Positions 27,223-58,361 of a DNA stretch of 64,000 nucleotides are shown here, piece after piece; the first letter of the stretch is position 1, and the number at the start of each line of letters is the position of its first letter. Under the pieces are notes generated by a model. It was not told the DNA's origin. It saw nothing but the letters and a program-made list of their open reading frames with translations, and did no database searches. The stretch lies in the sequence record NC_026927.1; one strand, written 5' to 3'. Made by a program: the position numbers and the translations under genes.

Positions 27223-27290
27223 TGTGACAGTCGACAAACTGGCACAGGGGGGTTGGCAAACCCCCTTTTTTGTGCTATAATAACAGGGTA
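27223..27290 (+). promoter_or_regulatory. Cassette copy 1
   Basis: TGTGACAGT-CGACAA-ACTGGCACA; TTGGCA-17-TATAAT; G6/C5 hairpin + T6. Confidence 0.85.
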
Positions 27291-27314
27291 GTCAAACAGA
27301 GAGGTTAGGTTCTA

Positions 27315-27665
27315 GTGGGTTTCCTGAAGTCTCTGTTTGCTACTGCCTTGGTGGGTATTGTTGGTGTGGTGTCTCCCGCCGAGGCAAGTGTAGGTGGCAA
27401 TATGTCTCCAGTCGTAGAGGGTATGTGTATAAAGTACACACCCTTTGGTGATTTGCCCTGTAAGATTAGAGTATACGATAGTGAAGAACTAGTGTATATT
27501 ACAGATGGTCATAATACTATGACATATACCAAGCACCCATTCATACCATATGCGTGGACAATGTATGTGAATGAACAACGGATATCTAATATGTTATGCT
27601 CCCTAGATAAGTATAACTTCTCTTGTTTCACCTCAATCCAATTTGTTCCTGATTATGAAAACTAA
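27315..27665 (+). CDS. Hypothetical exported protein
   Basis: GTG start, signal peptide ending PAEA. Confidence 0.65.
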   Translation: MGFLKSLFATALVGIVGVVSPAEASVGGNMSPVVEGMCIKYTPFGDLPCKIRVYDSEELVYITDGHNTMTYTKHPFIPYAWTMYVNEQRISNMLCSLDKYNFSCFTSIQFVPDYEN

Positions 27666-27987
27666 ATCATTGATGCTCACCAGTTTGATGGTGGCAACGA
27701 TAACCGCATCACCTGTCATGGCGTACGGATATCGCCAACCATACTATCAACAACCCCCAGTTGTTATTCAACAGCCAGCACCTGTTATCATTCAACAACC
27801 AAGACCCAGTACCCTAGAAACTGTTTTGGGTATTGCAGTTATTGGTGCAGGTTTATACTGGAATAGTCCAGCATATCAGAATGATCATGGATATTATAAT
27901 GGAAATAGAAACCATCATCACAACCAATACCAAGGTGGCAAAACATATGTAATTTGTAATGATTACGGACGGAGGTATTACTGCTGA
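27655..27987 (+). CDS. Hypothetical exported protein
   Basis: Signal peptide MKTKSLML..SPVMA; Q/P/H-rich. Confidence 0.65.
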   Translation: MKTKSLMLTSLMVATITASPVMAYGYRQPYYQQPPVVIQQPAPVIIQQPRPSTLETVLGIAVIGAGLYWNSPAYQNDHGYYNGNRNHHHNQYQGGKTYVICNDYGRRYYC

Positions 27988-28196
27988 TGGATTTTGTGGC
28001 ATTTATGATTGATAAGGAAAACGCCTTATCACTGATACAATCACTTCACGAATCTGCCGATAAGTGTAGTAAAGATGGAAGACGAATTATGGAAGCAAAC
28101 TATACCAAACTAGCAGACATGATGATGGAACAATACCTAGTATCAGAGAGTATCCACAGGAAGAGAAAAAGAAATAACGGAGATTATATCGGCTAA
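27987..28196 (+). CDS. Hypothetical protein
   Basis: Coupled ORF in chain. Confidence 0.55.
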   Translation: MDFVAFMIDKENALSLIQSLHESADKCSKDGRRIMEANYTKLADMMMEQYLVSESIHRKRKRNNGDYIG

Positions 28197-28768
28197 TGAT
28201 TGACTATCTTACCATCCCTAATAGCTTATCAGACAAACTTTGTGACGACATCATTCACAAGTTTGACAGTGATGATAGAGTTGATTATGGTAAAATTAAT
28301 ATGGGAGATGTTGATACTGAGGTCAAAAGATGTAAAGAGTTGTTCATATCAATCCTAGATAACTGGCGAGATCTTGACAATCAGGTATTCAATGCGTCGG
28401 TGAAAGGGTTAAGTCAATACCGTGAGTACATTAATGAGTTATACGATGCCGATTATCTTCTAGGATCAGATAATTCTGATCAAGGTTACCGGGTAAAGAG
28501 ATACGATATTGGTGAAGATTACTTTCATTGGCATCATGATCTACGCATAGATGAAAACCGTAGGATGAGATCAGTTGCCTTCATATGGTATCTAAATGAT
28601 GTGGAAGAGGGTGGTGAAACAGAATTTAGTAATGGTCTAAAGATACGTCCAGAGAAAGGTAAACTACTTCTATTTCCATCTACATGGAACAACGTACACA
28701 GAGGGAATACACCAATAAGTAATACGAAGTATGCTATTACTAGTTTCCTCTATTCCTCCTACGATTAG
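28196..28768 (+). CDS. 2OG-Fe(II) oxygenase (prolyl-4-hydroxylase-like)
   Basis: FHWHHD, IWYLNDVEEGGETEF, FPSTWNNVHRG, KYAITSF. Confidence 0.9.
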   Translation: MIDYLTIPNSLSDKLCDDIIHKFDSDDRVDYGKINMGDVDTEVKRCKELFISILDNWRDLDNQVFNASVKGLSQYREYINELYDADYLLGSDNSDQGYRVKRYDIGEDYFHWHHDLRIDENRRMRSVAFIWYLNDVEEGGETEFSNGLKIRPEKGKLLLFPSTWNNVHRGNTPISNTKYAITSFLYSSYD

Positions 28769-28797
28769 GTGATATATACTAAGTATGGGATACTTCA

Positions 28798-29352
28798 GTG
28801 ACAAAGGGTTATCGAATCAGGGGAGACTTTATTGCAAGTCTCATTAAACAACACGACTGTAAGATTGGTTATGAAATTGGGGTATCCAATGGTGCAACTT
28901 TTGGTAAGATCTTAAAGAAATGTGATAATATTGAGTGGCATGGTGTAGATCCATGGGTTGTATGTTCCGAGTATGATAAACGCCCCAATGGTAAGGGTAA
29001 GTGGAATCATGATGGTAACTATAAGAAAGTTCAGGAGATTGTTAGTAAGTATCCAAAGCGTGCATATACCCACCGCATGACCTCTGTAGAGGCTGCAAAG
29101 GAGGTAGAGGATAGAAGTATTGATATTATCTTTATAGACGGTCTGCACACCTACGAGGGGGTGAAGGAAGATCTAGAGGCTTGGGTGCCAAAGATCAAAA
29201 TAGGTGGTATAATCTCTGGACATGACTATAAAGGTATGAAGAGACATGAGGGTGTGACTATACGAGTGAATGAAGTATTTGGTGAAGAAAACATTACTAC
29301 TGGTCCAGATGTGACCTGGTGGTTATACAAAACGGAGGAACACGATGACTGA
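28798..29352 (+). CDS. SAM-dependent methyltransferase (Methyltransf_24-like)
   Basis: YEIGVSNG, GVDPW, DIIFIDGLHTYEGV, GGIISGHDY. Confidence 0.85.
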   Translation: MTKGYRIRGDFIASLIKQHDCKIGYEIGVSNGATFGKILKKCDNIEWHGVDPWVVCSEYDKRPNGKGKWNHDGNYKKVQEIVSKYPKRAYTHRMTSVEAAKEVEDRSIDIIFIDGLHTYEGVKEDLEAWVPKIKIGGIISGHDYKGMKRHEGVTIRVNEVFGEENITTGPDVTWWLYKTEEHDD

Positions 29353-30106
29353 GGGTTATGTTGTTATTGCACTTGGCGATAAGTATGTTCAACTCGCCAA
29401 GAACTTTGAAGATACACTAAGACAAAACGGTGACAATCGTCCTGTTCATGTTGTCACTGAAGACATGATTGATAAGGATAATGATAAGTACAGGGACTGT
29501 GATGTTCCCAACGAAAGGTATAACTGCTACCCCAAACTTCACTTCAATGAGTATGCGATATTTGATCATAGTATCCTAATCGATGCCGATGTTCTGTGCG
29601 TAGGTGATACCCAACACGTTTGGGATATGTGTAAAGAACAGGAACAGTTTATTCTTCACCGTGGGTGGGGACAAGTTACTAAATGGAATAGAGAACTACA
29701 GAAGAAAGTGTGGGACGTTCATGGGTTCGTACCTCCTCGCATTCACGGAGCTTTCTGTTATCTAAGGAAGGCAGATATCAATGAAGACTTCTTTGAATTT
29801 ATCCAAAATAATGTGTGGTTTCAGTATACTGAATGGTGTACGGAAGATGTCAAAGCAAGACATCACAGGTTAAGTAGATCAGACCAGGTGATATATGCTA
29901 TTGGTTATGGTAAGTTTGATCTCATGCCCTGTCAGTTAATGGAAGTCCCTATTATGACTCATATATTGACAGCGGCACACGTTAATCCTCCATACGATAG
30001 AATCACTTTTAAGGATCAAATTGGACCCGATTTACAACATCCAGTGGCATTTGCCCATATCGAACAACTATTTCAGGAGAGCACCCCAGAAAGTTTTCTA
30101 AGGTGA
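29345..30106 (+). CDS. GT-A (GT8-like) glycosyltransferase
   Basis: YVVIALGDKY N-terminus, SILIDADVL DxD motif, SDQ..YAI. Confidence 0.65.
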   Translation: MTEGYVVIALGDKYVQLAKNFEDTLRQNGDNRPVHVVTEDMIDKDNDKYRDCDVPNERYNCYPKLHFNEYAIFDHSILIDADVLCVGDTQHVWDMCKEQEQFILHRGWGQVTKWNRELQKKVWDVHGFVPPRIHGAFCYLRKADINEDFFEFIQNNVWFQYTEWCTEDVKARHHRLSRSDQVIYAIGYGKFDLMPCQLMEVPIMTHILTAAHVNPPYDRITFKDQIGPDLQHPVAFAHIEQLFQESTPESFLR

Positions 30107-30186
30107 CAGTCCACAAACTGGCACACAGGGCTTGGCAACCCTCCAAAAAGGTGCTATACTATCCAAGTAACCAAAGGAAATGATTT
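30102..30186 (+). promoter_or_regulatory. Cassette copy 2
   Basis: GGTGACAGT-CCACAA-ACTGGCACA; TTGGCA..TGCTATACT. Confidence 0.85.
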
Positions 30187-30408
30187 ATGAAACCAGCAGA
30201 AATTCTCTACGAAATGCAATCCATTCGTAAAGTCTGGCATAATAATAATTTCGTTATCAGTCCCGAACTAAACCGTCGCTATTGTGAACTTCTTAAACTC
30301 CGCCGTGAACGAGTTTCTCAATTCTATAAAGAGGGAAGGGTCGCTACAGGATCACAGACCCCCGACCTCAAAGCCCGAGAAGCAGCCAGACAAGCCGAGG
30401 TTGGTTGA
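30187..30408 (+). CDS. Hypothetical protein
   Basis: First ORF after cassette, AAGGA RBS. Confidence 0.7.
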   Translation: MKPAEILYEMQSIRKVWHNNNFVISPELNRRYCELLKLRRERVSQFYKEGRVATGSQTPDLKAREAARQAEVG

Positions 30409-30412
30409 GCCT

Positions 30413-30652
30413 ATGCAGGAACTTCTAGATACTTTCTATACAACCCCCTATGGTGATTTTGCCATTAGAAAGACTCGTTTCGGTGTTCATACCTCATATG
30501 ATCGAGAGGGAACCGATTTGGTGACAGGTTTAGAGTGGATTGACGTATTCACCACCACACCTTGTCACCTACAATGGGAGAAGGAGGGTTACAAACCCCC
30601 CGAAGGTACAGTTCAAGCAACCTATGATAGTGTAGTCTCTGGAAAACTCTAA
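30413..30652 (+). CDS. Hypothetical protein (start refined from 30284)
   Basis: ATG 4 nt after previous stop. Confidence 0.6.
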   Translation: MQELLDTFYTTPYGDFAIRKTRFGVHTSYDREGTDLVTGLEWIDVFTTTPCHLQWEKEGYKPPEGTVQATYDSVVSGKL

Positions 30653-30999
30653 TGGAAGACCGAAAATCACAACTATACAGCATCATGTATGATGCCATCA
30701 GTGAATTAACTGAGCACGAGAGTGCTGAGGATATCTTTGACAATATTGTAGAGTATTTTGCTCTACGTGTTGAAGAAGCCCGTACTGAGGTTGATACTTA
30801 CACGGATATGTTAAACGTATTCCGCAAAGACAACCCAGTGAGAGACGTTCCTAGTGCAGATCCATACAAGAGAACTGAATGGGAACACGCATTTGGTGAT
30901 ATGGATGACATCAATCAAACATACATGCCATCAAACCAACACATCTGGAACGAGTTTCTTAAGAATATCAAATTCACGGACAATCAAGATACTAAATAA
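30652..30999 (+). CDS. Hypothetical protein
   Basis: Coupled ORF. Confidence 0.65.
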   Translation: MEDRKSQLYSIMYDAISELTEHESAEDIFDNIVEYFALRVEEARTEVDTYTDMLNVFRKDNPVRDVPSADPYKRTEWEHAFGDMDDINQTYMPSNQHIWNEFLKNIKFTDNQDTK

Positions 31000-31019
31000 A
31001 CACTATCAGGAGAAAAGAG

Positions 31020-31217
31020 ATGACTACTGACCCAAACGATAAGTACGCTAAGTTCAAAGTACCATTTGGCACTAATGAACATCACGAAGATGATGAATGG
31101 GATCCCACAACTGAGGGTAAAATCTCTGATTGGCACAACCGACATCAAGATAAACTCTTAGATGAGTTTTGTGACACTCACCCAGGCGCACCCCAGTGTA
31201 AGGTGTTTGACGATTAA
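31020..31217 (+). CDS. CP12-like protein (C-terminal Cx8C domain)
   Basis: Ends LDEFCDTHPGAPQCKVFDD, matching the CP12 C-terminal C-x8-C-[RK]-[VI]-[YF]-DD; AGGAG RBS; CTAAATA at 30992. Confidence 0.65.
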   Translation: MTTDPNDKYAKFKVPFGTNEHHEDDEWDPTTEGKISDWHNRHQDKLLDEFCDTHPGAPQCKVFDD

Positions 31218-31265
31218 CAAAGTGGCACAAGACCACTTGACAGTACCACATTATTAGGTTACAGT
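31206..31265 (+). promoter_or_regulatory. Cassette copy 3 (degenerate left arm)
   Basis: TTTGACGAT-TAACAA-AGTGGCACA; TTGACA-17-TACAGT. Confidence 0.7.
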
Positions 31266-31287
31266 ACATTTGTTCAAGAGGTTTCTC

Positions 31288-31458
31288 ATGACTACCGTTG
31301 TTGATTCAGAGGTTATCTTTGCTGACGCTTTCAGTGAAGATGGTATAGACTACGGAACTGGTTATTATGTAACTAAGTTCTATAGCAATGGTATGACCGA
31401 CCTATTTGGACCATACAATTTTGAGGAAGACGCCCTCAATCTTGCCACTGTTTATTGA
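31288..31458 (+). CDS. Hypothetical protein
   Basis: ATG after GAGG; track start 31270 is TTG. Confidence 0.55.
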   Translation: MTTVVDSEVIFADAFSEDGIDYGTGYYVTKFYSNGMTDLFGPYNFEEDALNLATVY

Positions 31459-31474
31459 TTCCTTCCTTTTTATT

Positions 31475-31603
31475 ATGACTTTTGACACCTACGAAGACGA
31501 AAGTATCTTCACTATTCTCGGTATTGCCGAAGAAGGTGAAGAAGAAACAGAAAACCCCTATTCCACTGAGGATACTAAAACACTAAAAGAATATGGCTAT
31601 TGA
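31475..31603 (+). CDS. Small acidic hypothetical protein
   Basis: Refined start MTFDTYEDE. Confidence 0.45.
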   Translation: MTFDTYEDESIFTILGIAEEGEEETENPYSTEDTKTLKEYGY

Positions 31604-31675
31604 TTTCTCGTTCATTCTAGGTTTAGTTTTCATTTGGTTGGGACTAAATATCCGTATAGTGAGAGAGGTGGAATA

Positions 31676-31963
31676 GTGGATTTCAGGGTAACAGTAAGAA
31701 CACACACCGGGGCAGTTAGAGTTGTCGAGGTGAGCAACATGCCGAACGAGGAGGCAGCCAGAGCGGAAGCTGTTGGTATGACTTTCGGTAGGGTTCTGCA
31801 GGTTGAGTGTTTAGATGAGATCCCAGAACAATCCAAACCTAAAAAGAAAAGAGGACCAGTTCAAGAGATTGAACGAGAACTTAGACCAGGTGAAACCGAA
31901 ACAATTGTAACAGGTTACAATAGCAACCCGTTAGCAGTGTTCTTCACTTTAGATGTTTTTTAG
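31676..31963 (+). CDS. Hypothetical protein
   Basis: GTG after GAGGTGG RBS (track start 31634). Confidence 0.55.
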   Translation: MDFRVTVRTHTGAVRVVEVSNMPNEEAARAEAVGMTFGRVLQVECLDEIPEQSKPKKKRGPVQEIERELRPGETETIVTGYNSNPLAVFFTLDVF

Positions 31964-31995
31964 GGGTTGACACACCCCTTTTTTTGTGCTATACT
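31962..31995 (+). promoter_or_regulatory. Sigma70 promoter inside terminator-like hairpin (no palindrome)
   Basis: AGGGG-TTGACACA-CCCCT-T6; TTGACA(31967)-17-TATACT(31990). Confidence 0.8.
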
Positions 31996-32016
31996 TATAC
32001 CAATCGCAGGAGATCA

Positions 32017-32283
32017 ATGGAAGAAAACATGTCGATTTCGACAGAACTTCTAACCAGCATAAACGACGCCATGTATGTTGCCACTAACAACGCAGCTACT
32101 TACATGCACGGTGATAGAGGTGCTGACGCTATGTGTCTCCTAAACGAGTGGACTACAGAGGATGGTGAATGTTTACTCACACAATATGCAAAGGGTGAAG
32201 TATGTGAGCACATGGGAACTTTCATGTTTATCAACCTAGAAGAAGAAACATGGGGTGAGTTTATTATATCCGATGATGAGTAA
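32017..32283 (+). CDS. Hypothetical protein
   Basis: ATG after AGGAG. Confidence 0.65.
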   Translation: MEENMSISTELLTSINDAMYVATNNAATYMHGDRGADAMCLLNEWTTEDGECLLTQYAKGEVCEHMGTFMFINLEEETWGEFIISDDE

Positions 32284-32530
32284 ACTATATACTACAGACA
32301 ATTATTCAGGTACAATGAACCTAACTGAACATCAAAAGATTCAACTCTCACAATTTATTCATGAGTCGTTCTCTACATTCTATGAGGAGGAACTAAAGTT
32401 TCAAGTAGAAACTCTAAAAGATGATGATAAGTTGGATTGGACTTATACAATCACACCAAGAGACTCAGGGGAGATTTATGATAAGGTTCAGGAATTATTC
32501 ACACTGGAAAGGCGTGTGACAGTCGAATAA
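32273..32530 (+). CDS. Hypothetical protein
   Basis: Ends ..RRVTVE* inside cassette 4. Confidence 0.6.
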   Translation: MMSKLYTTDNYSGTMNLTEHQKIQLSQFIHESFSTFYEEELKFQVETLKDDDKLDWTYTITPRDSGEIYDKVQELFTLERRVTVE

Positions 32531-32596
32531 GTGACACAAGGGGGGTTGGCAAACCCCCTTTTTGCTGCCATAATATACTCATACACACAAAGACCC
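32515..32596 (+). promoter_or_regulatory. Cassette copy 4
   Basis: TGTGACAGT-CGAATA-AGTGACACA; TTGGCA..CATAAT. Confidence 0.85.
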
Positions 32597-32725
32597 ATGA
32601 ACGTCCCCAACTGGCAGAAGCACTCCAAGAAAGACCAGAAGGGTCGCGGAGTGAGCAAGGGTCAGATGAGAGCCCGCAAACAGGCTCTACGTGCCCTGAA
32701 GGCAAAGCTCCTTGTGACAGTCTAG
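32597..32725 (+). CDS. Small basic hypothetical protein, 42 aa
   Basis: MNVPNWQKHSKK..RARKQALRALK; starts at cassette ATG. Confidence 0.7.
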   Translation: MNVPNWQKHSKKDQKGRGVSKGQMRARKQALRALKAKLLVTV

Positions 32726-32795
32726 GAAGTGGCACAAGCCCCCTAGGCAAGACCCCCAAACCCTGCTATACTAAACACATACAAAGGAAACCACC
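32713..32795 (+). promoter_or_regulatory. Cassette copy 5
   Basis: TGTGACAGT-CTAGGA-AGTGGCACA. Confidence 0.9.
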
Positions 32796-33206
32796 ATGGC
32801 TCGTCACTCTGAAGTTCTCATCCAAGGCACCGAGGTTCCCGGTCTTCGTATGATCGTAACCGTTCCAGTCGATCACACCTGGGCATCAGAAACCGCCCGT
32901 AGCATCTACGGATTCGGTGGCAACACCCAATACATCTGGCGGAAGTCTTGGGAGACTAACAAACCCGCTCCCCGTGGTGGTGGTGGTTCCCCCTCCTCCT
33001 CTGGCATGGGTCCTGGAGCTATCCTGATGGGGATGATTGGTCTTATCCTGGTTGCTGGTATTGGTTCCGCCTTCGAGGGTAACGACACCCCCTCAGCTCC
33101 TTCCTATGACGCTCCCGCACCTGTTGAGAGGTCATACGTTCCACAGGCACCCGCAGCCTCCTATGACAATGGCCCTTGTCTCACCGCTAACTTCGAACCT
33201 TGTTAA
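32796..33206 (+). CDS. Hypothetical membrane protein
   Basis: One TM segment GAILMGMIGLILVAGIG. Confidence 0.7.
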   Translation: MARHSEVLIQGTEVPGLRMIVTVPVDHTWASETARSIYGFGGNTQYIWRKSWETNKPAPRGGGGSPSSSGMGPGAILMGMIGLILVAGIGSAFEGNDTPSAPSYDAPAPVERSYVPQAPAASYDNGPCLTANFEPC

Positions 33207-33207
33207 T

Positions 33208-33381
33208 ATGAATGACTTTCGCCCCCCGCATCACACCACTACTAAAGAAGAGTGGGAGTTTATTTTCCAAACACAGATACATAACTGCGCCCAACTAAAG
33301 AACACAGAACTCCAACGTTTTGTGTGTGTAGATAGTACGGGCAACAAAACTACCAAATATGTTATAGAATACAATGACTGA
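33208..33381 (+). CDS. Hypothetical protein
   Basis: Refined start MNDFRPP. Confidence 0.55.
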   Translation: MNDFRPPHHTTTKEEWEFIFQTQIHNCAQLKNTELQRFVCVDSTGNKTTKYVIEYND

Positions 33382-33664
33382 AAAAGAAGTAGAGCTACAC
33401 TTTGGGAGTGAGTATGAGGCTGGCATTGACTATGGGGATAGTGATGATTCAGACATTTTAGACTACACCAAAGAAGTAAGTGTCACACTAACCCGTTCAG
33501 ATTGGAATTGGTTTGTTACACTGATGTCAGACTCCGTTAATAAGATGGAGGCTGCAGTTTCTGCACAAGGTATGGATGCTGAGTCCTTCCTTTCTATTGA
33601 TGTTCTTCGCACTATTCGTAATGAAATCGCAACTCAGAGTGGGCTCACTCAATACATTGATTGA
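33374..33664 (+). CDS. Hypothetical protein
   Basis: Coupled ORF. Confidence 0.65.
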   Translation: MTEKEVELHFGSEYEAGIDYGDSDDSDILDYTKEVSVTLTRSDWNWFVTLMSDSVNKMEAAVSAQGMDAESFLSIDVLRTIRNEIATQSGLTQYID

Positions 33665-33665
33665 G

Positions 33666-33938
33666 ATGCCAGTAGTGGCACCTAAAGGTTATCACTATGA
33701 GGCAGTAGAACACAAACAAAACGTAGTGGCTATTTGGTTATGTGGAGGTCCAACATACCTCTACAAGATGGGAGAAACTGCTAGAACTATTCACTCCTTC
33801 TATAATATTAAGAAGAAAACCTGGTATGCACCTATCAACTGCAAGAAGCCAGGTAAGGAGGTATCAGTGGATAAGATACGACCTTACACATCAATGCAAC
33901 TGAACTACAACCCTCTGGAGATGCTACTATATGGCTAA
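33666..33938 (+). CDS. Hypothetical protein
   Basis: Refined start MPVVAPKGYHYE. Confidence 0.65.
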   Translation: MPVVAPKGYHYEAVEHKQNVVAIWLCGGPTYLYKMGETARTIHSFYNIKKKTWYAPINCKKPGKEVSVDKIRPYTSMQLNYNPLEMLLYG

Positions 33939-33973
33939 ATATATGTTATAATATCATAACATATATCACGAAT

Positions 33974-34195
33974 ATGAAGTCCAAAGACCAATACAAGAAA
34001 GAGTTTCAATTCACACTGAATACATCTGATGATAAGATCGCGGAAGAGAATATTCTTCACGATTTCGCCAGAGAGGTTTCAGTTATTGATGCTTTCCTAC
34101 AAGGTGGGAAGGTATCACTAAAGGAGGCAAAACAACGTATCAAAGATGTATACAAAGTGTGGAAGAACTCACTGAAAAACAACAACCAAATGTAA
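33974..34195 (+). CDS. Hypothetical protein
   Basis: TGTTATAAT extended -10 at ~33944 upstream. Confidence 0.6.
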   Translation: MKSKDQYKKEFQFTLNTSDDKIAEENILHDFAREVSVIDAFLQGGKVSLKEAKQRIKDVYKVWKNSLKNNNQM

Positions 34196-35194: not shown

Positions 35195-35212
35195 CCTAAT
35201 TGAGGATTTTGA

Positions 35213-50108: not shown

Positions 50109-50188
50109 CAGTCTAGGAACTGGCACAAGGGGGGTTGGCAAGACCCCCCAAAACCTCTATACTAAACACATACCAAACAACCCAGACC
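50104..50188 (+). promoter_or_regulatory. Cassette copy 24
   Basis: TGTGACAGT-CTAGGA-ACTGGCACA. Confidence 0.9.
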
Positions 50189-50737: not shown

Positions 50738-50779
50738 TACACTAAGTAACACTCACCAAACACACTAACTAACAACATC

Positions 50780-51498: not shown

Positions 51499-51548
51499 TT
51501 TTTCCATATTCCTGTCGGCAACCACCTCCTACCATACCCCCTGCCAAA

Positions 51549-51655
51549 CCGATATGGATTTTTCACCTTTTCCGTCTAGTGACTCACTGGGTTCTCAGTG
51601 GGACCAAAATGAGAATCCACCCCCATACCCCCAGACAGAGCAAAACTCATAACCA
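51549..51655 (+). repeat. Second non-coding element, copy B
   Basis: Shares three blocks and spacing with 41720-41827. Confidence 0.75.
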
Positions 51656-51736
51656 TGTGACAGTTGGATTAGTGGCACACGAAAGCCCGCAAACCCCTCA
51701 GGGGGTGCTATACTAAACCCATACACAACAAAACCA
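51656..51736 (+). promoter_or_regulatory. Cassette copy 25
   Basis: TGTGACAGT-TGGATT-AGTGGCACA. Confidence 0.9.
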
Positions 51737-52093
51737 ATGATCTACTCTATCACTCACCAGGAGACTGGCATTACGTATTCAGTTAGCACTGAAGATATTC
51801 GTAAAGTTGCTAACATCCTCCCAATGAACTCTGAGGAGTTGGCTGACATGATGACAGGTCTGAATTGTGACTCATATGCAGATATGGCAGAAGAGTATAT
51901 TGAAGAAGTTGCGGATATGTATGATGATGTGGCACTGGCAACTGATAAGTTTATGAGTAGCACTGATGAAAGGGCACAAACAACGTTCGCCTACTATCGT
52001 ATCATGAACTGTGATAACTCTGATGAAGTGACTACACAATATTGGCGTGATGACGCTATGGCTATGATCACTGACTACAATGATCGCAAATGA
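51737..52093 (+). CDS. Hypothetical acidic protein
   Basis: Cassette ATG. Confidence 0.7.
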   Translation: MIYSITHQETGITYSVSTEDIRKVANILPMNSEELADMMTGLNCDSYADMAEEYIEEVADMYDDVALATDKFMSSTDERAQTTFAYYRIMNCDNSDEVTTQYWRDDAMAMITDYNDRK

Positions 52094-52401
52094 AACGCTA
52101 CGGACTTTATTGGCTGAGAGCTATCACCCTAGGTGCTGGTCTAAACTTTGTTCTGACTGGTTATCTCATGGGTCACCAAAAGTGGAAGTTTCAACATGCA
52201 GCTCCACTCTCAGCGTTTATCTGTGTGAATCTATCGTATGTGGCGGATCGTCTTATCTTTGGTGATAAGAAGGAACCTGAAGATTTAGATCCAGATACTA
52301 TTGTTATATCAACCCCACACTGTTGCCCCGTATGTTCAGAGTATCCTTGCACTTGTGACACTTGGGAAAGTGGCACAACCCCCCTAGGCAACACCCTCTG
52401 A
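52090..52401 (+). CDS. Hypothetical membrane protein with Cys-rich tail
   Basis: Two hydrophobic segments; CCPVCSEYPCTC; reads through cassette 26. Confidence 0.6.
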   Translation: MKRYGLYWLRAITLGAGLNFVLTGYLMGHQKWKFQHAAPLSAFICVNLSYVADRLIFGDKKEPEDLDPDTIVISTPHCCPVCSEYPCTCDTWESGTTPLGNTL

Positions 52402-52437
52402 ACCTGCTATACTAAACACATACCAAAGGAACCAACC
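52354..52437 (+). promoter_or_regulatory. Cassette copy 26
   Basis: TGTGACACT-TGGGAA-AGTGGCACA. Confidence 0.9.
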
Positions 52438-52635
52438 ATGAAAGTCTCTCAGGAAGTTTTCAAGAGTTACATTCAGATACTGGATGAAAACACACAAACA
52501 TCATGGGATATCCTAAATGTTTTGAATGATATTGTTAGAGGTGACTGGGATAACTCAGTCCAGTATTGTTTGGAAAATCCATCAGGCGACCCTATGGATG
52601 ATTTCAACTACGCAGGCAGTCGCCACCACTATTGA
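52438..52635 (+). CDS. Hypothetical protein
   Basis: Cassette ATG; DDFNYAGSRHHY end. Confidence 0.7.
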   Translation: MKVSQEVFKSYIQILDENTQTSWDILNVLNDIVRGDWDNSVQYCLENPSGDPMDDFNYAGSRHHY

Positions 52636-52664
52636 TCACTAACTCACCACACTAACTAACAACT

Positions 52665-52949
52665 ATGACACGCACTCCAATGACAGTCACCCTCAAGCGT
52701 AGCGACTGGGAATGTTATACAGACACCCCCGATACTATCATCGAAACTATCAACTCATACTTCTCTTATGTGTTATCAACTAAAGATAACGCGTTTGATG
52801 CACAGTCTGAGATATTCAAGTTTCTGAATATGTTTAGTGAGTTTGGGTTTATGGATAGTGAGTGCCTAGAATGTGCAACTAGAGTTATCAATCGTTACTT
52901 TGATTCATATCTTTCCCGCTGGAGTCAGGTGGGTGATGTGACAGTCTAG
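52665..52949 (+). CDS. Hypothetical protein
   Basis: Ends ..DVTV* in cassette 27. Confidence 0.7.
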   Translation: MTRTPMTVTLKRSDWECYTDTPDTIIETINSYFSYVLSTKDNAFDAQSEIFKFLNMFSEFGFMDSECLECATRVINRYFDSYLSRWSQVGDVTV

Positions 52950-53017
52950 GAACTGGCACACGCTTCTCCGCAAACCCCTCAGGGGGTGCTATACTATATT
53001 CATACCAAAGGAACCAA
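52937..53017 (+). promoter_or_regulatory. Cassette copy 27
   Basis: TGTGACAGT-CTAGGA-ACTGGCACA. Confidence 0.9.
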
Positions 53018-53335
53018 ATGAATTTCAGAACACTAGCACTCACCACCACCCTGGCTCTCTCCACTGTCCTAGGTGGTTTGGCTCCTGAAGCTAAGTCAGC
53101 TGACTTTTGTGACAACATCCCCGGCAACTCGGGATACGTTTGTGTTACCATGGGTCTCTGGTTCGACTTGGTTGAGGCAGACATACCCGCCTTTGGTGGT
53201 AAAGAGTCATTACACATCACCTGTGACAATGGTTGGTCATACCGATCTAATGGTAACTGGAACAAAGACGCCGCTTCCCTTGTGGCTAAGGAGTACTGTG
53301 AAGGTGCTGGCTGGAACAGCCACTCCGAGGTGTGA
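53018..53335 (+). CDS. Exported 4-Cys small protein
   Basis: Signal peptide; paralog-like to 49331. Confidence 0.75.
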   Translation: MNFRTLALTTTLALSTVLGGLAPEAKSADFCDNIPGNSGYVCVTMGLWFDLVEADIPAFGGKESLHITCDNGWSYRSNGNWNKDAASLVAKEYCEGAGWNSHSEV

Positions 53336-53414
53336 CAGTCTAGGAAGTGGCACAAGCCCCCTAGGCAAGACCCCTCGGGTCTGCTATACTATATTCATAC
53401 CAAACAAAGAAACC
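53331..53414 (+). promoter_or_regulatory. Cassette copy 28
   Basis: TGTGACAGT-CTAGGA-AGTGGCACA. Confidence 0.9.
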
Positions 53415-53687
53415 ATGTTTCCACACCTCCACATCTCTGAATCCAACCTCGGACCTCACACCTCCACGTTTTTCAAAGTATCATCACAACCACAAGATGA
53501 GTGGCAGAATGGCATTTTCCATAACTCACCTTATGGCATCTTTCACCTTCATTCTGAGAAAGGTGTTTATAAGTTGGAACTATCTTCCTCAGGTTTGAAT
53601 ACGCCGAAATTCAGGAAATGTAAGTGTGAAGATGAACTCACCGCACTCACTAAGATTCGTAAGTGGATGGATTCTTTCACCAACTGA
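53415..53687 (+). CDS. Hypothetical protein
   Basis: Start refined to cassette ATG. Confidence 0.7.
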   Translation: MFPHLHISESNLGPHTSTFFKVSSQPQDEWQNGIFHNSPYGIFHLHSEKGVYKLELSSSGLNTPKFRKCKCEDELTALTKIRKWMDSFTN

Positions 53688-53698
53688 TGTTATAATAA

Positions 53699-53722
53699 GA
53701 GGAGAATAACTCCTCTTTTTTT
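53699..53722 (+). terminator. Terminator-like hairpin directly before HNH gene
   Basis: GAGGAG-AATAA-CTCCTC-T7, preceded by TGTTATAAT. Confidence 0.6.
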
Positions 53723-54118
53723 ATGCCTAAGACCACGCACGGGATGTATGGAACACTGACATATAATAGTTGGGTTTCTATGAAATCAAGATGTAAGACC
53801 CAAGAGTGTTACAAAGGCGTGACAATATGTGAGAGTTGGCAAACATTTGAAGGGTTCTATTCTGATATGGGAGTGAGACCATCTAAGCAACATACACTGG
53901 ATAGGATAGACAATAGCAAAGGTTATACTCCATCCAATGTAAGATGGGCGACCAAGAAAGAACAGATAGACAATAGAACAATAGCAGTAACACTTACCAT
54001 TGATGGTGTTACTAAACCTCTACAAGACTGGTGCGATGAGTATAACCTAAACTACTGGACTTGCTGGAGCAGATTGAAACAATACAACTACACTGATAGA
54101 CAAGTTTTAGGGTTGTGA
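53723..54118 (+). CDS. HNH homing-endonuclease-like protein
   Basis: THG..YNSWVSMKSRC, TLDRIDNSKGYTPSNVRWAT. Confidence 0.85.
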   Translation: MPKTTHGMYGTLTYNSWVSMKSRCKTQECYKGVTICESWQTFEGFYSDMGVRPSKQHTLDRIDNSKGYTPSNVRWATKKEQIDNRTIAVTLTIDGVTKPLQDWCDEYNLNYWTCWSRLKQYNYTDRQVLGL

Positions 54119-54198
54119 CAGTTGGAGAAGTGGCACAACCCCCCTAGGCAAGACCCTTCACACCTGCTATACTATATTCATACCAAACAACCACACCA
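54114..54198 (+). promoter_or_regulatory. Cassette copy 29
   Basis: TGTGACAGT-TGGAGA-AGTGGCACA. Confidence 0.9.
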
Positions 54199-54372
54199 AT
54201 GAACCGACTAGAACTACTGACCCAACGTGAACAACTGATGGAGAGGATTGACTCTATCTGTGATGAATTCTTTTATAAGAACTATAATGGAGATACGTCA
54301 GAAGCAGATGAATTAGTTCGTATTCTATGTGATGCTGTTTGTGAAACCATAGACCCAGCGGGCATGGTGTGA
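54199..54372 (+). CDS. Small hypothetical protein, 57 aa
   Basis: Hand-translated MNRLELLTQREQLMERIDSI..ILCDAVCE. Confidence 0.7.
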   Translation: MNRLELLTQREQLMERIDSICDEFFYKNYNGDTSEADELVRILCDAVCETIDPAGMV

Positions 54373-54452
54373 CAGTTGGAGAAGTGGCACAAGCCCCCTA
54401 GGCAAACCCCTCCGTACCTGCTATACTATATTCATACCAAAGGAAACCGACC
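54368..54452 (+). promoter_or_regulatory. Cassette copy 30
   Basis: TGTGACAGT-TGGAGA-AGTGGCACA. Confidence 0.9.
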
Positions 54453-54716
54453 ATGTTCCAAGTCTGTACCGAAGACGCTCTAGATCACCGCTACACAATT
54501 GATGAGTTTGAGACACTGGAAGAAGCCCAATCTTGTTATAACGAGTGTGTGAAGGTTGGAGCTGAGGGTTATGAGATTTCGGTTGAGTTAGAGGAAATCA
54601 TTGGCGATCATGATGATTACGTTTCCATCGAGTTCACCGAGTGGTTTACACAAGAGAGTTGGGAGGAAGCTCATCCCTGGAATGAGAAGGAAGGAGTATG
54701 GGAAAACATAGACTGA
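54453..54716 (+). CDS. Hypothetical acidic protein
   Basis: Cassette ATG. Confidence 0.7.
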   Translation: MFQVCTEDALDHRYTIDEFETLEEAQSCYNECVKVGAEGYEISVELEEIIGDHDDYVSIEFTEWFTQESWEEAHPWNEKEGVWENID

Positions 54717-54803
54717 TGTGACAGTTGGAGAAGTGGCACAAGCCCCCTAGGCAAACCCCCCCATACCTGCTATACTAAACACATACCAAACAAAGGAAAC
54801 CAC
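54717..54803 (+). promoter_or_regulatory. Cassette copy 31
   Basis: TGTGACAGT-TGGAGA-AGTGGCACA. Confidence 0.9.
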
Positions 54804-55145
54804 ATGACCACCACCCAAACCAAAACCGAGTTCCTCACCGAGGCAATGATCGAACAGGTGAACAACCTCTGGAAGGTTTATAACGTGGAGTCAGGTCACA
54901 CCATCACCCCACTTCTTAAGTATGAAGTGGCTAAGAAGTACATCAAGGTCTATCGTTTAGACGTTGTGAATGGTGAGATTCGTGACGGTCGTTCAGTGTT
55001 TATGTTTATCGATAAGGAGACTGGTGCAGTTCTGAAACCAGCCTCATGGAGAGCACCCGCTAAGGGTATCCGGTTCTACATTGAGTCGTTGGCTGAGAAT
55101 CCTGAGCTGGTTGATCAGTATGGTAGTTTCCTCTACCGTCGCTGA
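54804..55145 (+). CDS. Conserved phage hypothetical protein
   Basis: KYIKV..SVFMFIDKETGAVLKPASWRAPAKGIRF. Confidence 0.75.
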   Translation: MTTTQTKTEFLTEAMIEQVNNLWKVYNVESGHTITPLLKYEVAKKYIKVYRLDVVNGEIRDGRSVFMFIDKETGAVLKPASWRAPAKGIRFYIESLAENPELVDQYGSFLYRR

Positions 55146-55227
55146 TGTGACAGCCACCAAGGTGGCACAGGGGGGCTAGGCAGCTCCCCTTCTTTATGCT
55201 ATACTATATTCATACCAAAGGACCCCG
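55146..55227 (+). promoter_or_regulatory. Cassette copy 32
   Basis: TGTGACAGC-CACCAA-GGTGGCACA. Confidence 0.88.
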
Positions 55228-56481
55228 ATGACCCTCACTCTCCGCCCCCACCAACTAGAAGCACTTCAGGTGATGGCTGAGACTCGTCTTGGTCAGATAT
55301 TAGTTCCTACTGGTGGTGGTAAGACCCTTATCGCTATCATGGACGTTGTGAGGACTCTGGAGAACGCAGGAACCCCTCAGACCATCGTTGTGGTGGCACC
55401 TAGGATATTGTTAGCCCAGCAACTCTGTAGTGAGTATATGGAGGTTCTGAGTGATAGGTTCGCCAACGTTATCCCCGCCCATATCCATTCAGGTCATACA
55501 CCCCACTTCTCTACCACTAACATTCAGAAGATTCATCTCTTTGAGAAGATGATGGATACCGCCAACCTCCACCGCATATATTTCACCACATACAACTCAC
55601 TTCCACGTTTAGCAGAAGCAGGTGTGAGTGTCGATACTATTATGTTTGATGAGGCACATAACTCTACTCGTAATGACTTCTATCCCGCTACCAAGTATTT
55701 CTCACAGACCGCTAGTCGTTGTTACTACTTTACAGCAACTCCCCGTCACTCTGTAACATCCAAGAGACACGGAATGAACGAGTCTGATGTATATGGTCAG
55801 GTCATCTATAATGTTCCCGCTCCTACACTTGTACAGGGTGGGTTCATCATCCCCCCACAGGTTCGTGTTAAAGAGATGGAGTTTGTAGCTAAACATGAAC
55901 TCATCTCACAGCGTGATACAAACCACCTCATCTCCTGTATTGATGACAACCACACGAGCAAAGTTCTAGTTTGTGCTAAGTCAGTCAAACAGATCATGCG
56001 TATGTTTAGTGAGACCGATATCAGCCAACAACTTGATGATCGTGGTTTCTCCTATATGTACATCTCAGCTAAGACTGGTGGTGTTATCAATGGTAAGAAA
56101 GTATCACGTACTATGTTCTTCGATACTCTAAACGAGTGGGGTAAGGATAACAACAAGAAGTTCATTGTACTTCATCATTCTATTCTCTCTGAGGGTATCA
56201 ATGTAAGTGGTCTAGAGTCCGCTATCTTCTTACGTACTATGGATCATATCACTATCAGTCAAACGATTGGAAGAGTAATAAGATTACATAAGGATGATGC
56301 CCAAGGTATGAGAGATGGTTCGATTCGCCCTGGTGACTTATCATCCTATACTAAGTCCTTTGGTTTGTGTATTGTTCCAGTTTATTCGAAGACACAACAA
56401 ACAGTTGCCAAGTCTCTTCAGGCAGTTGTTAATACCGTCTTTGTGGAAGGTGAAGCAGCAACCACAGTTGTGAGGCGTTAG
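55228..56481 (+). CDS. SF2 DEAH helicase (Res-like), paralog of 38392
   Basis: PTGGGKT, FDEAHN, FTATP, SILSEGINV, QTIGRVIR. Confidence 0.9.
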   Translation: MTLTLRPHQLEALQVMAETRLGQILVPTGGGKTLIAIMDVVRTLENAGTPQTIVVVAPRILLAQQLCSEYMEVLSDRFANVIPAHIHSGHTPHFSTTNIQKIHLFEKMMDTANLHRIYFTTYNSLPRLAEAGVSVDTIMFDEAHNSTRNDFYPATKYFSQTASRCYYFTATPRHSVTSKRHGMNESDVYGQVIYNVPAPTLVQGGFIIPPQVRVKEMEFVAKHELISQRDTNHLISCIDDNHTSKVLVCAKSVKQIMRMFSETDISQQLDDRGFSYMYISAKTGGVINGKKVSRTMFFDTLNEWGKDNNKKFIVLHHSILSEGINVSGLESAIFLRTMDHITISQTIGRVIRLHKDDAQGMRDGSIRPGDLSSYTKSFGLCIVPVYSKTQQTVAKSLQAVVNTVFVEGEAATTVVRR

Positions 56482-56482
56482 T

Positions 56483-56611
56483 ATGAATTATCAAAACCAA
56501 GCTCTTGTGATACTTCTAGGTCTAATGTTCATAGCTGGTATTAACGTACTTCACTATGAACAACAATGGCAATGTAGGATGCATCAAACCTATTGTTTTG
56601 TTTCTGAATAA
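56483..56611 (+). CDS. Small membrane protein, 42 aa
   Basis: Hand-translated MNYQNQALVILLGLMFIAGI; convergent overlap with GIY-YIG gene. Confidence 0.45.
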   Translation: MNYQNQALVILLGLMFIAGINVLHYEQQWQCRMHQTYCFVSE

Positions 56612-57300
56612 TACCATAGGTAACCCTTCCAACGCGAACCCCATTTGATAGAAGTACAGATACCTTTCCCACGATCCTCCTCATTAAAGGATCTCATCGC
56701 ATCACTAATAGAGTCAAAGACGGGAGTAACATGACCAGTCTTATGAACTCCATAGACTTGTTTCTTATTCTTAGCGTGTTTATGAATCCACCATTTGTAA
56801 CCATATGCCGAACCCTCTCTTGTGATACTTCTCCTGATATTTGATGGCCTACCATCCACAAACTCAGCGGCAGCAACCCAACCATGAAAGGTCTTAATCT
56901 TACCCGTTTCCAAGCACCTACACTTGATGACGTTCTTATCATGTTTCTTAGGTTTCTTCTTTCGTTGATAACCCCAACGCCTATCCCCTTTATGATATGA
57001 CTCTTTATTATTCAGCTTCCTGGTAGTATGTTCTAACACCAAATTGTTATACTCAGGGTTATACTTATTCATCCAATATTCCACTCGTTCAGTAAGCTTA
57101 TTCTCATTCACTTCTTCTAGTATACGTATAGTGAAGTCATCGGAGTTATAGTAAGATAAGGCATTCGACAGTGGAGTATTTTCCTCCTTATGATTTTCCA
57201 ATATCCCAGCCCAAACTTTATTCAGGGGAAGCGTATCATAACCGATGTATTTGTGAGAGGTTTGTCTATTCAAGATGATGTAGATGTTTGTGATGCTCAC
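56590..57300 (-). CDS. GIY-YIG homing endonuclease with NUMOD1-like C-terminal repeats
   Basis: NIYIILNRQTSHKYIG, FTIRILEE, E..W...YN; FHGWVAAAEF..GSAYGYKW and FDSISDAMR..WKGYLWYY. Confidence 0.8.
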   Translation of the reverse strand: MSITNIYIILNRQTSHKYIGYDTLPLNKVWAGILENHKEENTPLSNALSYYNSDDFTIRILEEVNENKLTERVEYWMNKYNPEYNNLVLEHTTRKLNNKESYHKGDRRWGYQRKKKPKKHDKNVIKCRCLETGKIKTFHGWVAAAEFVDGRPSNIRRSITREGSAYGYKWWIHKHAKNKKQVYGVHKTGHVTPVFDSISDAMRSFNEEDRGKGICTSIKWGSRWKGYLWYYSETKQ

Positions 57301-57385
57301 GGGAAATAGTCTCTATTCTGGTTGTATATATAAACATTATCTTTTTTTATCACATGTGCCTGTTTATCTCCCTTATGGATGTTAT

Positions 57386-57541
57386 AATAGAAAGGAAGAG
57401 ATCAATGTATATAACCAATGGAATTACCTAGGTAAGGATGAATAGAATAACCAATAGATTAACCTAGTAAGAAGTGATCTAATAGAAGGTAATCATATAG
57501 AGGAAGGTGAATAGAAAGCCCTATAGAAAGACCCAATAGAA
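57386..57541. repeat. AATAGAA heptamer cluster in long intergenic region
   Basis: Exact copies at 57386, 57441, 57481, 57510, 57535 plus 3 one/two-mismatch variants; palindrome TTACCTAGGTAA 57424-57435. Confidence 0.7.
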
Positions 57542-57614
57542 TGTAATCTAATCCATTGTAATCACCTATAGGATAGTATCATATAACGAGGTCTTTACAT
57601 CTCACTAAGCTCTT

Positions 57615-57673
57615 CCTAAACTCCACTGCCCGTTGAGCCTAAACCTCTCTGCCCGTTGCAACCTAAGCCCGTT
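57615..57673. repeat. ~23-bp tandem repeat (CCTAA..GCCCGTT x3)
   Basis: CCTAA at 57615/57638/57662; GCCCGTT at 57628/57651/57667. Confidence 0.7.
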
Positions 57674-57734
57674 ATAACACGGGACTTCGGAAAAGTCAAG
57701 GGATCTCCGAAAAACTTAATATTTCCGAGACACC

Positions 57735-57823
57735 CCAGACACCCACGGAACTGGCACAAACCCCCTTGGCAAACCCCCCGAAATGGCATATACTATATTC
57801 ATACAAACAAAGGGAACCGACCC
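57735..57823 (+). promoter_or_regulatory. Cassette copy 33 (degenerate left arm)
   Basis: CCAGACACC-CACGGA-ACTGGCACA; TTGGCA..TATACT. Confidence 0.85.
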
Positions 57824-58057
57824 ATGGAATTCATCCAAACTGACTACCCCGCTAACATGGCTCCCAATGTTATGGAGAGGAACTATGGTCGGGGTATCAT
57901 CCTGACTCAGGTCAATGAGGATGGTGTCATCCCATTCTCAGTATTCAATTTCAAAAAAGAGGATTGGAACTGGGGAGCTGACTACTACATGACCGAGCAT
58001 AACTTCTATACACTAGAGGAGGCAGAGGCGGTAGTGACTCAGCTCGTAGCCAGCTGA
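57824..58057 (+). CDS. Hypothetical protein
   Basis: Start refined to cassette ATG. Confidence 0.7.
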   Translation: MEFIQTDYPANMAPNVMERNYGRGIILTQVNEDGVIPFSVFNFKKEDWNWGADYYMTEHNFYTLEEAEAVVTQLVAS

Positions 58058-58131
58058 ACCACTGGCACATGGGGGCTAGGCACAGCCCCCTCTATACCCT
58101 ATACTATATTCATACACAAGGGAACCACCCC
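58046..58131 (+). promoter_or_regulatory. Cassette copy 34 (degenerate left arm)
   Basis: GTAGCCAGC-TGAACC-ACTGGCACA. Confidence 0.85.
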
Positions 58132-58290
58132 ATGACCAAAGCAACTCAGAGACCTTCCACCCAGAGCCGTTACACCAGTCAGGTAGCCCGGGACCGTAAG
58201 GCAGCAGCACTCCAGAGGGCAGAGGAGCGTCGCCTCACTGGCTCATGTGGAGAGGATCAGGTGAACCGCCTCTACACTGTGACACTCTGA
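58132..58290 (+). CDS. Small basic hypothetical protein, 52 aa
   Basis: Cassette ATG; ends ..YTVTL* in cassette 35. Confidence 0.65.
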   Translation: MTKATQRPSTQSRYTSQVARDRKAAALQRAEERRLTGSCGEDQVNRLYTVTL

Positions 58291-58361
58291 TAACTGGTAC
58301 ACAGGGGGTTGACAATACACCCCCATGGCTCTATACTACACTCATACACAGATCCAACCCC
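58278..58361 (+). promoter_or_regulatory. Cassette copy 35
   Basis: TGTGACACT-CTGATA-ACTGGTACA; TTGACA..TATACT. Confidence 0.88.

Follow-up and report, generated by a model that had tools for sequence, protein, structure and literature searches.

Near-identical promoter modules as probable exchange points in the small-gene region of a T4-like marine cyanophage

Based on a computational analysis of 64,000 nucleotides (nt) of phage DNA, called the window throughout, we propose that the stretch from 27223 to 58364 is probably a hyperplastic small-gene region punctuated by 36 composite regulatory modules that double as recombination homology. The window corresponds to bases 1-64000 of Synechococcus phage ACG-2014f isolate Syn7803C90 (KJ019059 / NC_026927; megablast, 100% identity), a marine T4-like cyanomyovirus of 228 kb (Kyanoviridae, Atlauavirus). 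Each module joins a 24-bp palindrome, or dyad, to a predicted promoter, and the system is best filed as a cyanophage case of the promoter-early stem-loop (PeSL) elements, built on a cyanophage-type early promoter with a conserved dyad. The array lies between tail-fibre/tail protein genes (to 27215) on one side and the gp25/gp6 baseplate module (from 62735) on the other. It is rich in small open reading frames (ORFs), mostly annotated as hypothetical.

The palindrome TGTGACAGT-N6-A[C/G]TGGCACA has 18 exact matches on the + strand of the window, against 0.00 expected (100 shuffles). Allowing up to 3 mismatches raises the count to 56 against 0.21 expected, both strands of this near-palindrome being counted; allowing up to 4 gives 30 + strand copies, the first at 27223 and the last at 58278, and leaves the - strand of the window without an independent copy. 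An nhmmer profile built from the 30 copies recovered 36 modules, all on the + strand, between 27223 and 58352, and had no match in 1-27000 or 58400-64000. Five modules found by the profile alone have a truncated or degenerate left arm (38319, 42937, 49030, 57738, 58051), and the module at 31964 is the sole profile-only copy without a palindrome. The 31-kb array holds 36 of the ~40 dyad promoters of the 228-kb genome, with 0 in the flanking structural genes. An initial annotation, made from the letters of the window, had listed 35 co-oriented copies lacking from the structural region, a count that is essentially right and an arrangement borne out in full. The spacer it described, constantly 6 nt and variable in sequence, holds in all 30 full copies. 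The order that it gave for the remaining elements (7 nt, -35, 17 nt, -10, leader, ATG) is also recovered, and a generic sigma-70 consensus scan, run independently, chose the same -35 and -10 hexamers. Its placing of the palindrome at about -55 agrees with a measured span of ~-66 to -43, centred near -55 relative to the predicted start, and where it had seen cassettes of one to about a dozen ORFs, many below 60 aa, we find 1 to 13 annotated ORFs headed per module, many under 60 aa. On sequence grounds, its view of the repeats as promoter-type modules heading gene cassettes is supported. The array and its modules are as follows.

27223..58364, +: whole array; 36 co-oriented promoter modules; ~83 annotated + strand ORFs
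27223..27317, +: module 1; exact dyad; G6/C5 hairpin with T6 run around -35 TTGGCA, terminator-like; -10 TGCTATAAT; heads gp023-gp028
30102..30189, +: module 2; 1 mismatch; gp028 stop is the TGA in GGTGA of the dyad
31206..31290, +: module 3; 3 mismatches, degenerate
31964..32019, +: promoter-only module without dyad; GGGG/CCCC hairpin, T7 run, TGCTATACT
32515..32599, +: module; 1 mismatch; terminator-like hairpin at -35
32713..32798, +: module; exact dyad; 13 ORFs, gp039-gp051
36296..36382, +: module; left border of variable slot gp052-054
36949..37033, +: module; exact dyad; heads gp053, Eco57I-type methyltransferase
38213..38299, +: module; exact dyad; first copy of 95-bp tandem duplication
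38319..38394, +: module, partial second copy of the duplication, right arm onward; heads gp054, ResIII/DEAD helicase
39839..39923, +: module; right border of variable slot gp052-054
40660..40781, +: module; exact dyad; CCGCAA subclass, weak -10, long leader
41828..41936, +: module; left arm TGTGCCAGT, giving a near-perfect dyad
42614..42701, +: module; exact dyad; left junction of KJ019148 2.76-kb deletion
42937..43021, +: module; left arm degenerate
43273..43355, +: module; exact dyad; left junction of gp067 deletion (4 relatives)
43530..43616, +: module; exact dyad; right junction of gp067 deletion
45125..45211, +: module; exact dyad; itself present or absent; 4 relatives lack it and show translational coupling of gp071 and gp072
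45448..45532, +: module; exact dyad; heads gp073 (DUF6267); right junction of KJ019148 deletion
46596..46682, +: module; 2 mismatches; 9 ORFs, gp075-gp083
48803..48892, +: module; 3 mismatches; 621-bp extra cassette here in KJ019151
49030..49107, +: module; left arm degenerate
49248..49333, +: module; 2 mismatches
49800..49886, +: module; exact dyad; CCGCAA subclass
50104..50191, +: module; exact dyad; strong hairpin at -35
51656..51739, +: module; exact dyad; missing along with gp092 in 4 relatives
52354..52440, +: module; 1 mismatch
52937..53020, +: module; exact dyad; ATG marks the left edge of the slot in which gp096 is replaced
53331..53417, +: module; exact dyad; right edge of the gp096 slot
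54114..54201, +: module; exact dyad; only in the window isolate, where it accompanies gp098 (HNH endonuclease by annotation, without Pfam match)
54368..54455, +: module; exact dyad
54717..54806, +: module; exact dyad; relatives have extra cassettes of two kinds here
55146..55230, +: module; 2 mismatches; heads gp102, ResIII/DEAD helicase
57738..57826, +: module; left arm degenerate; left junction of gp104 deletion
58051..58134, +: module; left arm degenerate; right junction of gp104 deletion
58278..58364, +: last module; 2 mismatches; extra 450-540-bp cassettes here in relatives

The copies are near-identical over ~100-105 nt, and each consists of an upstream stop codon, the 24-bp dyad, a -35, TGCTATACT, a leader and an ATG. 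The stop of the upstream ORF usually falls within or against the palindrome, as the TGA of TGTGA, as a TAG or TAA in the spacer, or immediately 5' of the palindrome. Because the module carries stop, dyad, promoter, leader and start, the DNA between two modules is bare ORF. The palindrome is followed by 7 nt, T[A/T]GGCA (CCGCAA as -35 in a minority subclass), 17 nt and TGCTATACT; the leader of ~25 nt contains a Shine-Dalgarno sequence (AAGGA) and belongs to one of two classes, ATATTCATACCAAAGGAACC or AAACACATACCAAAC, and the ATG lies at +80 to +89 counted from the palindrome's first base. A G5-6/C5-6 hairpin with the -35 hexamer in its loop is present in ~17 of the 36 modules (dG -11 to -17 kcal/mol), and in ~8 of these a T-run after the hairpin lends it a terminator-like look; modules without it carry a C-run in place of the left G-run. 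The palindrome's own hairpin is weak: most copies have a dG of about -3 to -6.6 kcal/mol, and one reaches -10.9. Subclasses of the module can be told apart by a G-run/C-run hairpin at the -35, by C-run/C-run without hairpin, by CCGCAA as -35 combined with a C5-TCA-G5 hairpin ahead of the -10, and by the two leader types. The segment that sets the subclass lies 24-50 nt after the palindrome start (compare 54392-54420 with 38237-38260).

Constraint is unevenly spread over the module. Among ten isolates, namely the window and the same region of nine sister genomes, divergence per site is 0.66% in the extended -10, 0.9% in the right arm, 1.3% in the leader and 1.9% in the left arm, against 2.4-2.6% in flanking coding sequence; the dyad spacer, the -35 hexamer and neighbouring positions reach 5-8%. 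The dyad is therefore among the most constrained parts of the module, together with the extended -10, and the pattern suggests that the promoter depends on these two elements rather than on the -35. Among the isolates the subclass segment evolves 2-3 times faster than coding sequence, a pattern suggestive of frequent gene conversion in patches from one module to another.

Evidence for a role in exchange comes from the comparison of these isolates, in which BLAST alignments of the nine relatives were chained against the window and every break was listed. Gene order is collinear across all ten, and the array differs from the relatives by ~20 distinct indels or replacements. In at least 13 of these ~20 events both junctions lie inside modules, where the flanking alignments overlap by 40-95 nt, a signature of homologous exchange within shared sequence. 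Modules make up 14% of the array region and 36 of 83 gene boundaries bear one; the excess of junctions at modules has P = 5e-18 against random positions and P = 7.5e-6 against a null limited to gene boundaries. Modules are sparse in the first 9 kb of the array (27.2-35.9 kb), and this part has zero indels. The cassette role put forward in the initial annotation hence stands: order is collinear, yet junctions fall at modules far above chance. What it said of a platform for acquiring and shuffling genes is right for gain, loss and replacement at modules and not for reordering: since none of the ten genomes has a cassette in a different slot, 'shuffling' in this sample goes no further than gain, loss and allelic replacement. 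Nor are the cassettes self-contained, as it had them, because most modules head several ORFs and the unit exchanged is usually the ORF or ORFs between two modules, not a module with its ORF.

Individual slots illustrate this turnover. Slot 36296-39923 holds, in the window, the 3.5-kb gp052-054, which encode an uncharacterised protein, an Eco57I-type methyltransferase and a ResIII/DEAD helicase; it is empty in KJ019143, and in KJ019151 and KJ019146 it is occupied by an unrelated 3.1-kb gene pair for a 691-aa protein and a 337-aa weakly Eco57I-like protein. This pair resembles a gene of phage S-CAM7 annotated as type II restriction-modification restriction subunit, and the slot looks like a defence or counter-defence swap site. 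Four isolates have deleted gp067 between modules 43273 and 43530, while KJ019148 lacks 2.76 kb between modules 42614 and 45448. The gene gp096 is swapped for two different ORFs with exact limits, from the ATG of module 52937 to the start of module 53331, the gp104 deletion has its junctions at modules 57738 and 58051, and relatives carry extra cassettes at modules 48803, 54717 (two different) and 58278. At 38213-38394 the window has a 95-bp tandem duplication of a module that is single-copy in KJ019102, KJ019145 and KJ019097. The duplicated piece takes in the first 24 nt of the helicase ORF, and the helicase gene (38392) is read in another frame than the ATG of the first copy (38297).

How might exchange occur? 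The modules at deletion and insertion junctions are hybrids, mosaics of two parental modules, in which the crossover site differs from event to event: it lies in the right arm, in the -35/-10 spacer, between -10 and leader or in the first codons, and never in the 6-nt spacer of the palindrome, whose sequence differs between the recombining modules. No integrase or recombinase is annotated across the 228-kb genome, and Pfam scans of 16 selected window or genome proteins and two KJ019151 cassette proteins gave no match to one. Spread crossovers together with the lack of an annotated recombinase fit general homologous recombination between repeats, not to an integron-like site-specific core. By annotation the genome encodes UvsX, UvsY, UvsW and gp46/47. 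In the mechanism that we envisage, the modules, being co-oriented, close-set and near-identical over ~100 nt, would act as portable homology for general recombination, presumably by the phage's own UvsX/UvsY/gp46-47 system. As the comparison shows, ORFs between two modules are deleted, inserted or replaced by unrelated ORFs, and an incoming ORF would receive stop, promoter, leader and start signals automatically. Host RNA polymerase holoenzyme would initiate at the modules soon after infection. The dyad would be the operator of a putative symmetric DNA-binding factor acting at a fixed distance from the -10; if an activator, such a factor might be host-encoded or virion-borne, and if an early shut-off factor it could, by logic only, be phage-encoded.

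The dyad is not confined to this phage. An exact-match scan of IMG/VR found it in at least 120 contigs. Among the matches listed (1.1 Mb) there are 141 distinct exact dyads and 479 further copies with up to 4 mismatches, on contigs of 33 to 59% G+C. A -10 (TAnnnT) lies 29-30 nt past the palindrome in ~70% of the exact copies listed, with a -35-like cTTG at +7, and no conserved sequence was found 5' of the palindrome among them. ACG-2014f homologues, often gp25/gp6 or the array gene gp073 (DUF6267), are encoded at 102 of the 120 loci listed, which are thus relatives with the same layout. A strand-bias count of the dyads is unreliable, as a near-palindrome matches both strands, and was not used; a protein-seeded IMG/VR search with helicase gp054 returned no relatives. 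Syn9 (Ormenosvirus) has the same architecture 5' of gp61, 63, 68, 73 and the helicase gene gp75, its right arm being mostly AGTGTCCAC. S-CAM7 (Mazuvirus) carries an array in the same genomic slot, with very similar promoter, hairpin and leader, a right arm that is kept and a left arm that is often degenerate. Its presence in the IMG/VR contigs, Syn9 and S-CAM7 makes the dyad abundant and conserved among T4-like cyanophages. Outside the array, ACG-2014f has about four more dyad promoters (NC_026927 116374, 118599, 159674 and 174204), 5' of a peptidase gene, cobS, gp220 and psbA; the dyad at 116374 has Syn9-type arms, GTGGACA...TGTCCAC.

In cellular genomes the picture differs. Scanning 596 Gb of bacterial genomes for the exact motif yielded 37 matches against ~35 expected by chance (our own calculation). 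Five of the 37 sit in phage-like promoter contexts in contigs of metagenome-assembled genomes, and five represent one orthologous Nodularia locus; the scan, which covered the exact motif only, gave no sign of a regulon in marine picocyanobacteria. In five Nodularia-type genomes the dyad has exact arms and variable spacers and lies 22 nt past the purH stop, on the opposite strand, beside a conserved terminator-like sequence. It is the only conserved cellular copy seen, and probably one inherited chance occurrence, not a regulon. The hypothesis of a host site gained no support from this exact-motif scan, in which the motif is not enriched and Nodularia amounts to a single inherited occurrence.

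What is the dyad? Its general consensus is TGTG[A/C]CA[G/C]T-N6-A[C/G]TG[G/T]CACA, and both half-sites share the degenerate TGTG[A/C]CA[G/C]T. In 479 independent copies listed, the pair at positions 5/20 occurs as CG 188, AG 154, CT 85 and AT 38 times, close to independence, and the pair at 8/17 as GG 162, CC 128, GC 118 and CG 19 times, with pairing combinations depleted. The distance from the palindrome to the downstream -10 is fixed, while that to the upstream stop ranges from -96 to +45. As sequence is kept and pairing is not, and as the -10 distance is fixed, the palindrome seems to be a double-stranded site for a symmetric factor at ~-66 to -43. The initial annotation had offered a dimeric activator site, a recombination core, or both; shared half-sites, lack of covariation and fixed -10 distance are what a symmetric factor's binding site would be expected to have, and the recombination core was not borne out. 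A sigma-54 promoter (TGGCAC) was also considered and rejected on reading the sequence, the spacing to the GC element being unsuitable; cyanobacteria, besides, are not known to have sigma-54.

Three other explanations have to be weighed against promoter modules that double as recombination homology. The palindrome could be the core of an integron- or dif/lox-like site-specific system, with 9-bp arms and a 6-bp crossover spacer, that moves cassettes. Its 9-6-9 geometry is like that of tyrosine-recombinase core sites, cassette junctions do fall at modules, and the palindrome holds the stop of the upstream ORF and so marks cassette ends. We nevertheless judge this very improbable: the inferred crossovers lie outside the 6-nt spacer, spacers are unlike between recombining copies, the whole genome lacks an annotated integrase or recombinase, the dyad-to--10 distance is fixed in hundreds of unrelated contigs, and the dyad also precedes single genes (psbA, cobS) outside any array. 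The palindrome might instead act in RNA, as a 3'-terminal hairpin of the upstream transcript that serves as terminator, stabiliser or processing site, and so be the stem-loop half of a classical PeSL. It abuts or holds the upstream stop codon, it can fold (dG about -3 to -6.6 kcal/mol, -10.9 in one copy), and the stem-loops of PeSL are terminators (PMC2839356). Even so, Watson-Crick combinations are not enriched at 5/20 and are under-represented at 8/17 in the 479 copies listed, the most frequent version is mismatched at two internal positions, the stem lacks a U-run after it, the fixed distance is to the -10 and not to the stop (-96 to +45), the terminator-like structure is a separate G/C hairpin at the -35, and no Rfam family matches; such a role is quite unlikely. 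On pair statistics and weak folding energies the palindrome was rejected as a functional hairpin.

The modules could also be promoters and nothing else, the indels being associated with them as a by-product of selection, without repeat-mediated recombination, in that only gene-boundary junctions survive and newly acquired genes need their own promoter. Viable indels must all respect ORFs, several homing-endonuclease insertions are off modules or one-sided (41664, 53672, 58522, 59344, 61358), and one module has been gained or lost alone with no flanking repeat. Against this, the excess persists under the gene-boundary null (P = 7.5e-6), junction pairs have 40-95 nt of near-identical sequence in common, hybrid modules are mosaics of both parents, and one module has undergone a 95-bp tandem duplication, so that we hold this account to be unlikely. 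A further proposal, which we consider doubtful, is that the dyad as operator of a host-encoded or virion-carried factor gives T4-like cyanophages an immediate-early promoter class of their own, independent of the -35, and that the module has been co-opted as a universal linker, with stop, operator, promoter, leader and start, making any ORF that recombines in between two linkers early-expressed. On this view, ~40 dyad copies arriving in a cell together could also titrate the factor from host promoters.

The proposal of composite modules used for exchange also has points against it. Viability selection would likewise favour junctions at gene boundaries, which the gene-boundary null controls only in part. 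Three to four events are away from modules (gp062, gp070, the HNH insertion at 41664 and 207 bp inserted near 52650), 3-4 further ones contact a module on a single side only, and cassettes keep to the same slot throughout the ten genomes. Consensus sequences are the source of the predictions on start sites, early timing and terminator activity. The half-site cores are ~14-15 bp apart, an odd spacing for a simple helix-turn-helix dimer, and with a left arm degenerate in S-CAM7 and in 5 window copies the full dimer site may be dispensable. Doron and co-workers (ISME J, 2016) reportedly described an element that drives early genes in Syn9 and P-TIM40, is novel and unlike host promoters, and is abundant and conserved across T4-like cyanophages, in genomes as well as metagenomes. 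The dyad is probably this same element: in Syn9 it precedes small genes that neighbour a helicase, and the weakly constrained -35 of the modules agrees with a promoter unlike those of the host. A part played by modules in gaining and losing genes is not known to belong to that earlier claim. Literature on cyanophage transcription, including papers citing the 2016 study, yielded no early-motif sequence, and a search by the letters of the motif returned only unrelated primer matches.

PeSL elements have been described in the T4-like phages RB49/phi1, T4/PST and KVP40/nt-1 (Arbiol et al. 2010, PMC2839356; Comeau et al. 2014, PMC4122927). The mechanism proposed for them is general homologous recombination between repeats, partly demonstrated via mini-circles, which can be detected in infected cells and in virions (PMC2839356, PMC4122927), and the sole cyanophage remark that we found notes a low PeSL density in S-PM2 (PMC4503421). 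The likeness to PeSL drawn in the initial annotation is apt; of five PeSL features, three are present and a fourth is partly so. The ACG-2014f modules are repeated and co-oriented; each has an apparent sigma-70-type promoter followed by a Shine-Dalgarno sequence and a downstream start codon; copies are many in the hyperplastic region and scarce in structural modules; and the indel and replacement junctions between relatives fall at the elements, with no dedicated recombinase. The partial feature is the stem-loop, of the RB49 type (Gn-loop-Cn): a G/C hairpin is found in ~17 of 36 modules, ~8 with a T-run, and the remaining modules have none. ACG-2014f differs from published cases in its carrier clade, a cyanomyovirus, in a G/C hairpin that encloses the -35 rather than preceding it and is missing from half of the copies, in a poorly constrained -35, and in the 24-bp dyad near -55, which is not in published PeSL descriptions. 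For the ACG-2014f isolates we found no published account of the array or of cassettes turning over between modules.

Two further systems invite comparison. Like an integron, the array is ordered and co-oriented, has short cassettes bounded by imperfect palindromes, and varies in content between close relatives. Unlike an integron (intI, attI, attC and a single Pc), it has no annotated integrase, its palindrome keeps sequence and not folded structure, its crossovers are not site-specific and are spread over the ~100-nt module, 36 promoter-type modules take the place of one common promoter, and cassettes keep their position. Three integron features are thus absent, namely an adjacent integrase gene, a fixed-point crossover and promoterless cassettes. 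Class I/II activator sites of bacterial promoters, as in the CRP/NtcA family (TGTGA-N6-TCACA, GTA-N8-TAC), share with the dyad an outer TGTG...CACA and a fixed position 5' of a weak -35 promoter. However, the outer TGTG/CACA of ACG-2014f are 16 bp apart instead of 6-8 bp, the centre is near -55 instead of -41.5 or -61.5, and the exact motif is not enriched in bacterial genomes, so that the match is a resemblance only.

What are the implications for cyanophage biology? T4-like cyanophages are among the most abundant viruses infecting the ocean's main primary producers, and the majority of their early genes are functionally uncharacterised. The 45 closely related ACG-2014f-type records deposited, a few of which are RefSeq copies of GenBank entries, amount to a natural experiment in which an early region appears to have been rebuilt via exchange at one repeated promoter module. 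The PeSL model would thereby extend to cyanophages, the entry points of restriction-modification-like and other accessory genes would be explained, and cassette slots gain exact coordinates. With the dyad a precise 24-mer that different genera share at an unvarying distance from the -10, what starts or stops cyanophage early transcription becomes directly testable. The array is a clean, well-populated example with testable coordinates, not a new category.

Some variation in the region follows another pattern. Past 58.4 kb, where the window is free of modules, indels are homing-endonuclease-sized. HNH/homing-endonuclease genes and insert-sized segments whose presence or length varies by isolate lie at 53672-54199, 56590-57300 (- strand), 59344-59875 and 61358-61822, and a further variable segment of this kind, HNH/homing or insert-sized, at 14158-14731 of KJ019148. 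The junctions of homing-type segments are off modules, which indicates a second, homing-type source of variation beside the module-mediated one. The gene gp098, which entered with the downstream module 54114, is equipped with a promoter-like box of its own, TGTTATAAT, and with a terminator-like hairpin.

Scans of the window for tRNA genes and Rfam families gave no match, including in the ~520 nt without annotated gene at 57300-57824, between gp103 (- strand, endonuclease-like) and module 57738. Outside the window, at NC_026927 142082-142774, the genome encodes a sigma-70-family protein of 230 aa with regions 2 and 4 (Pfam E = 8e-13, 5e-7), which coexists with the T4-type late factors gp55 and gp33 and could bear on the middle or early programme. 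An unannotated 148-aa ORF at 58520-58966 of the window (- strand) has an HNH_3 endonuclease domain (E = 1.4e-10), where RefSeq has only a 29-aa ORF, gp106; the 464-bp segment that contains it (insertion 58522-58987) is carried by the window isolate only and is missing from the nine relatives. The interval 58-60 kb has the highest G+C of the window, 50.5%.

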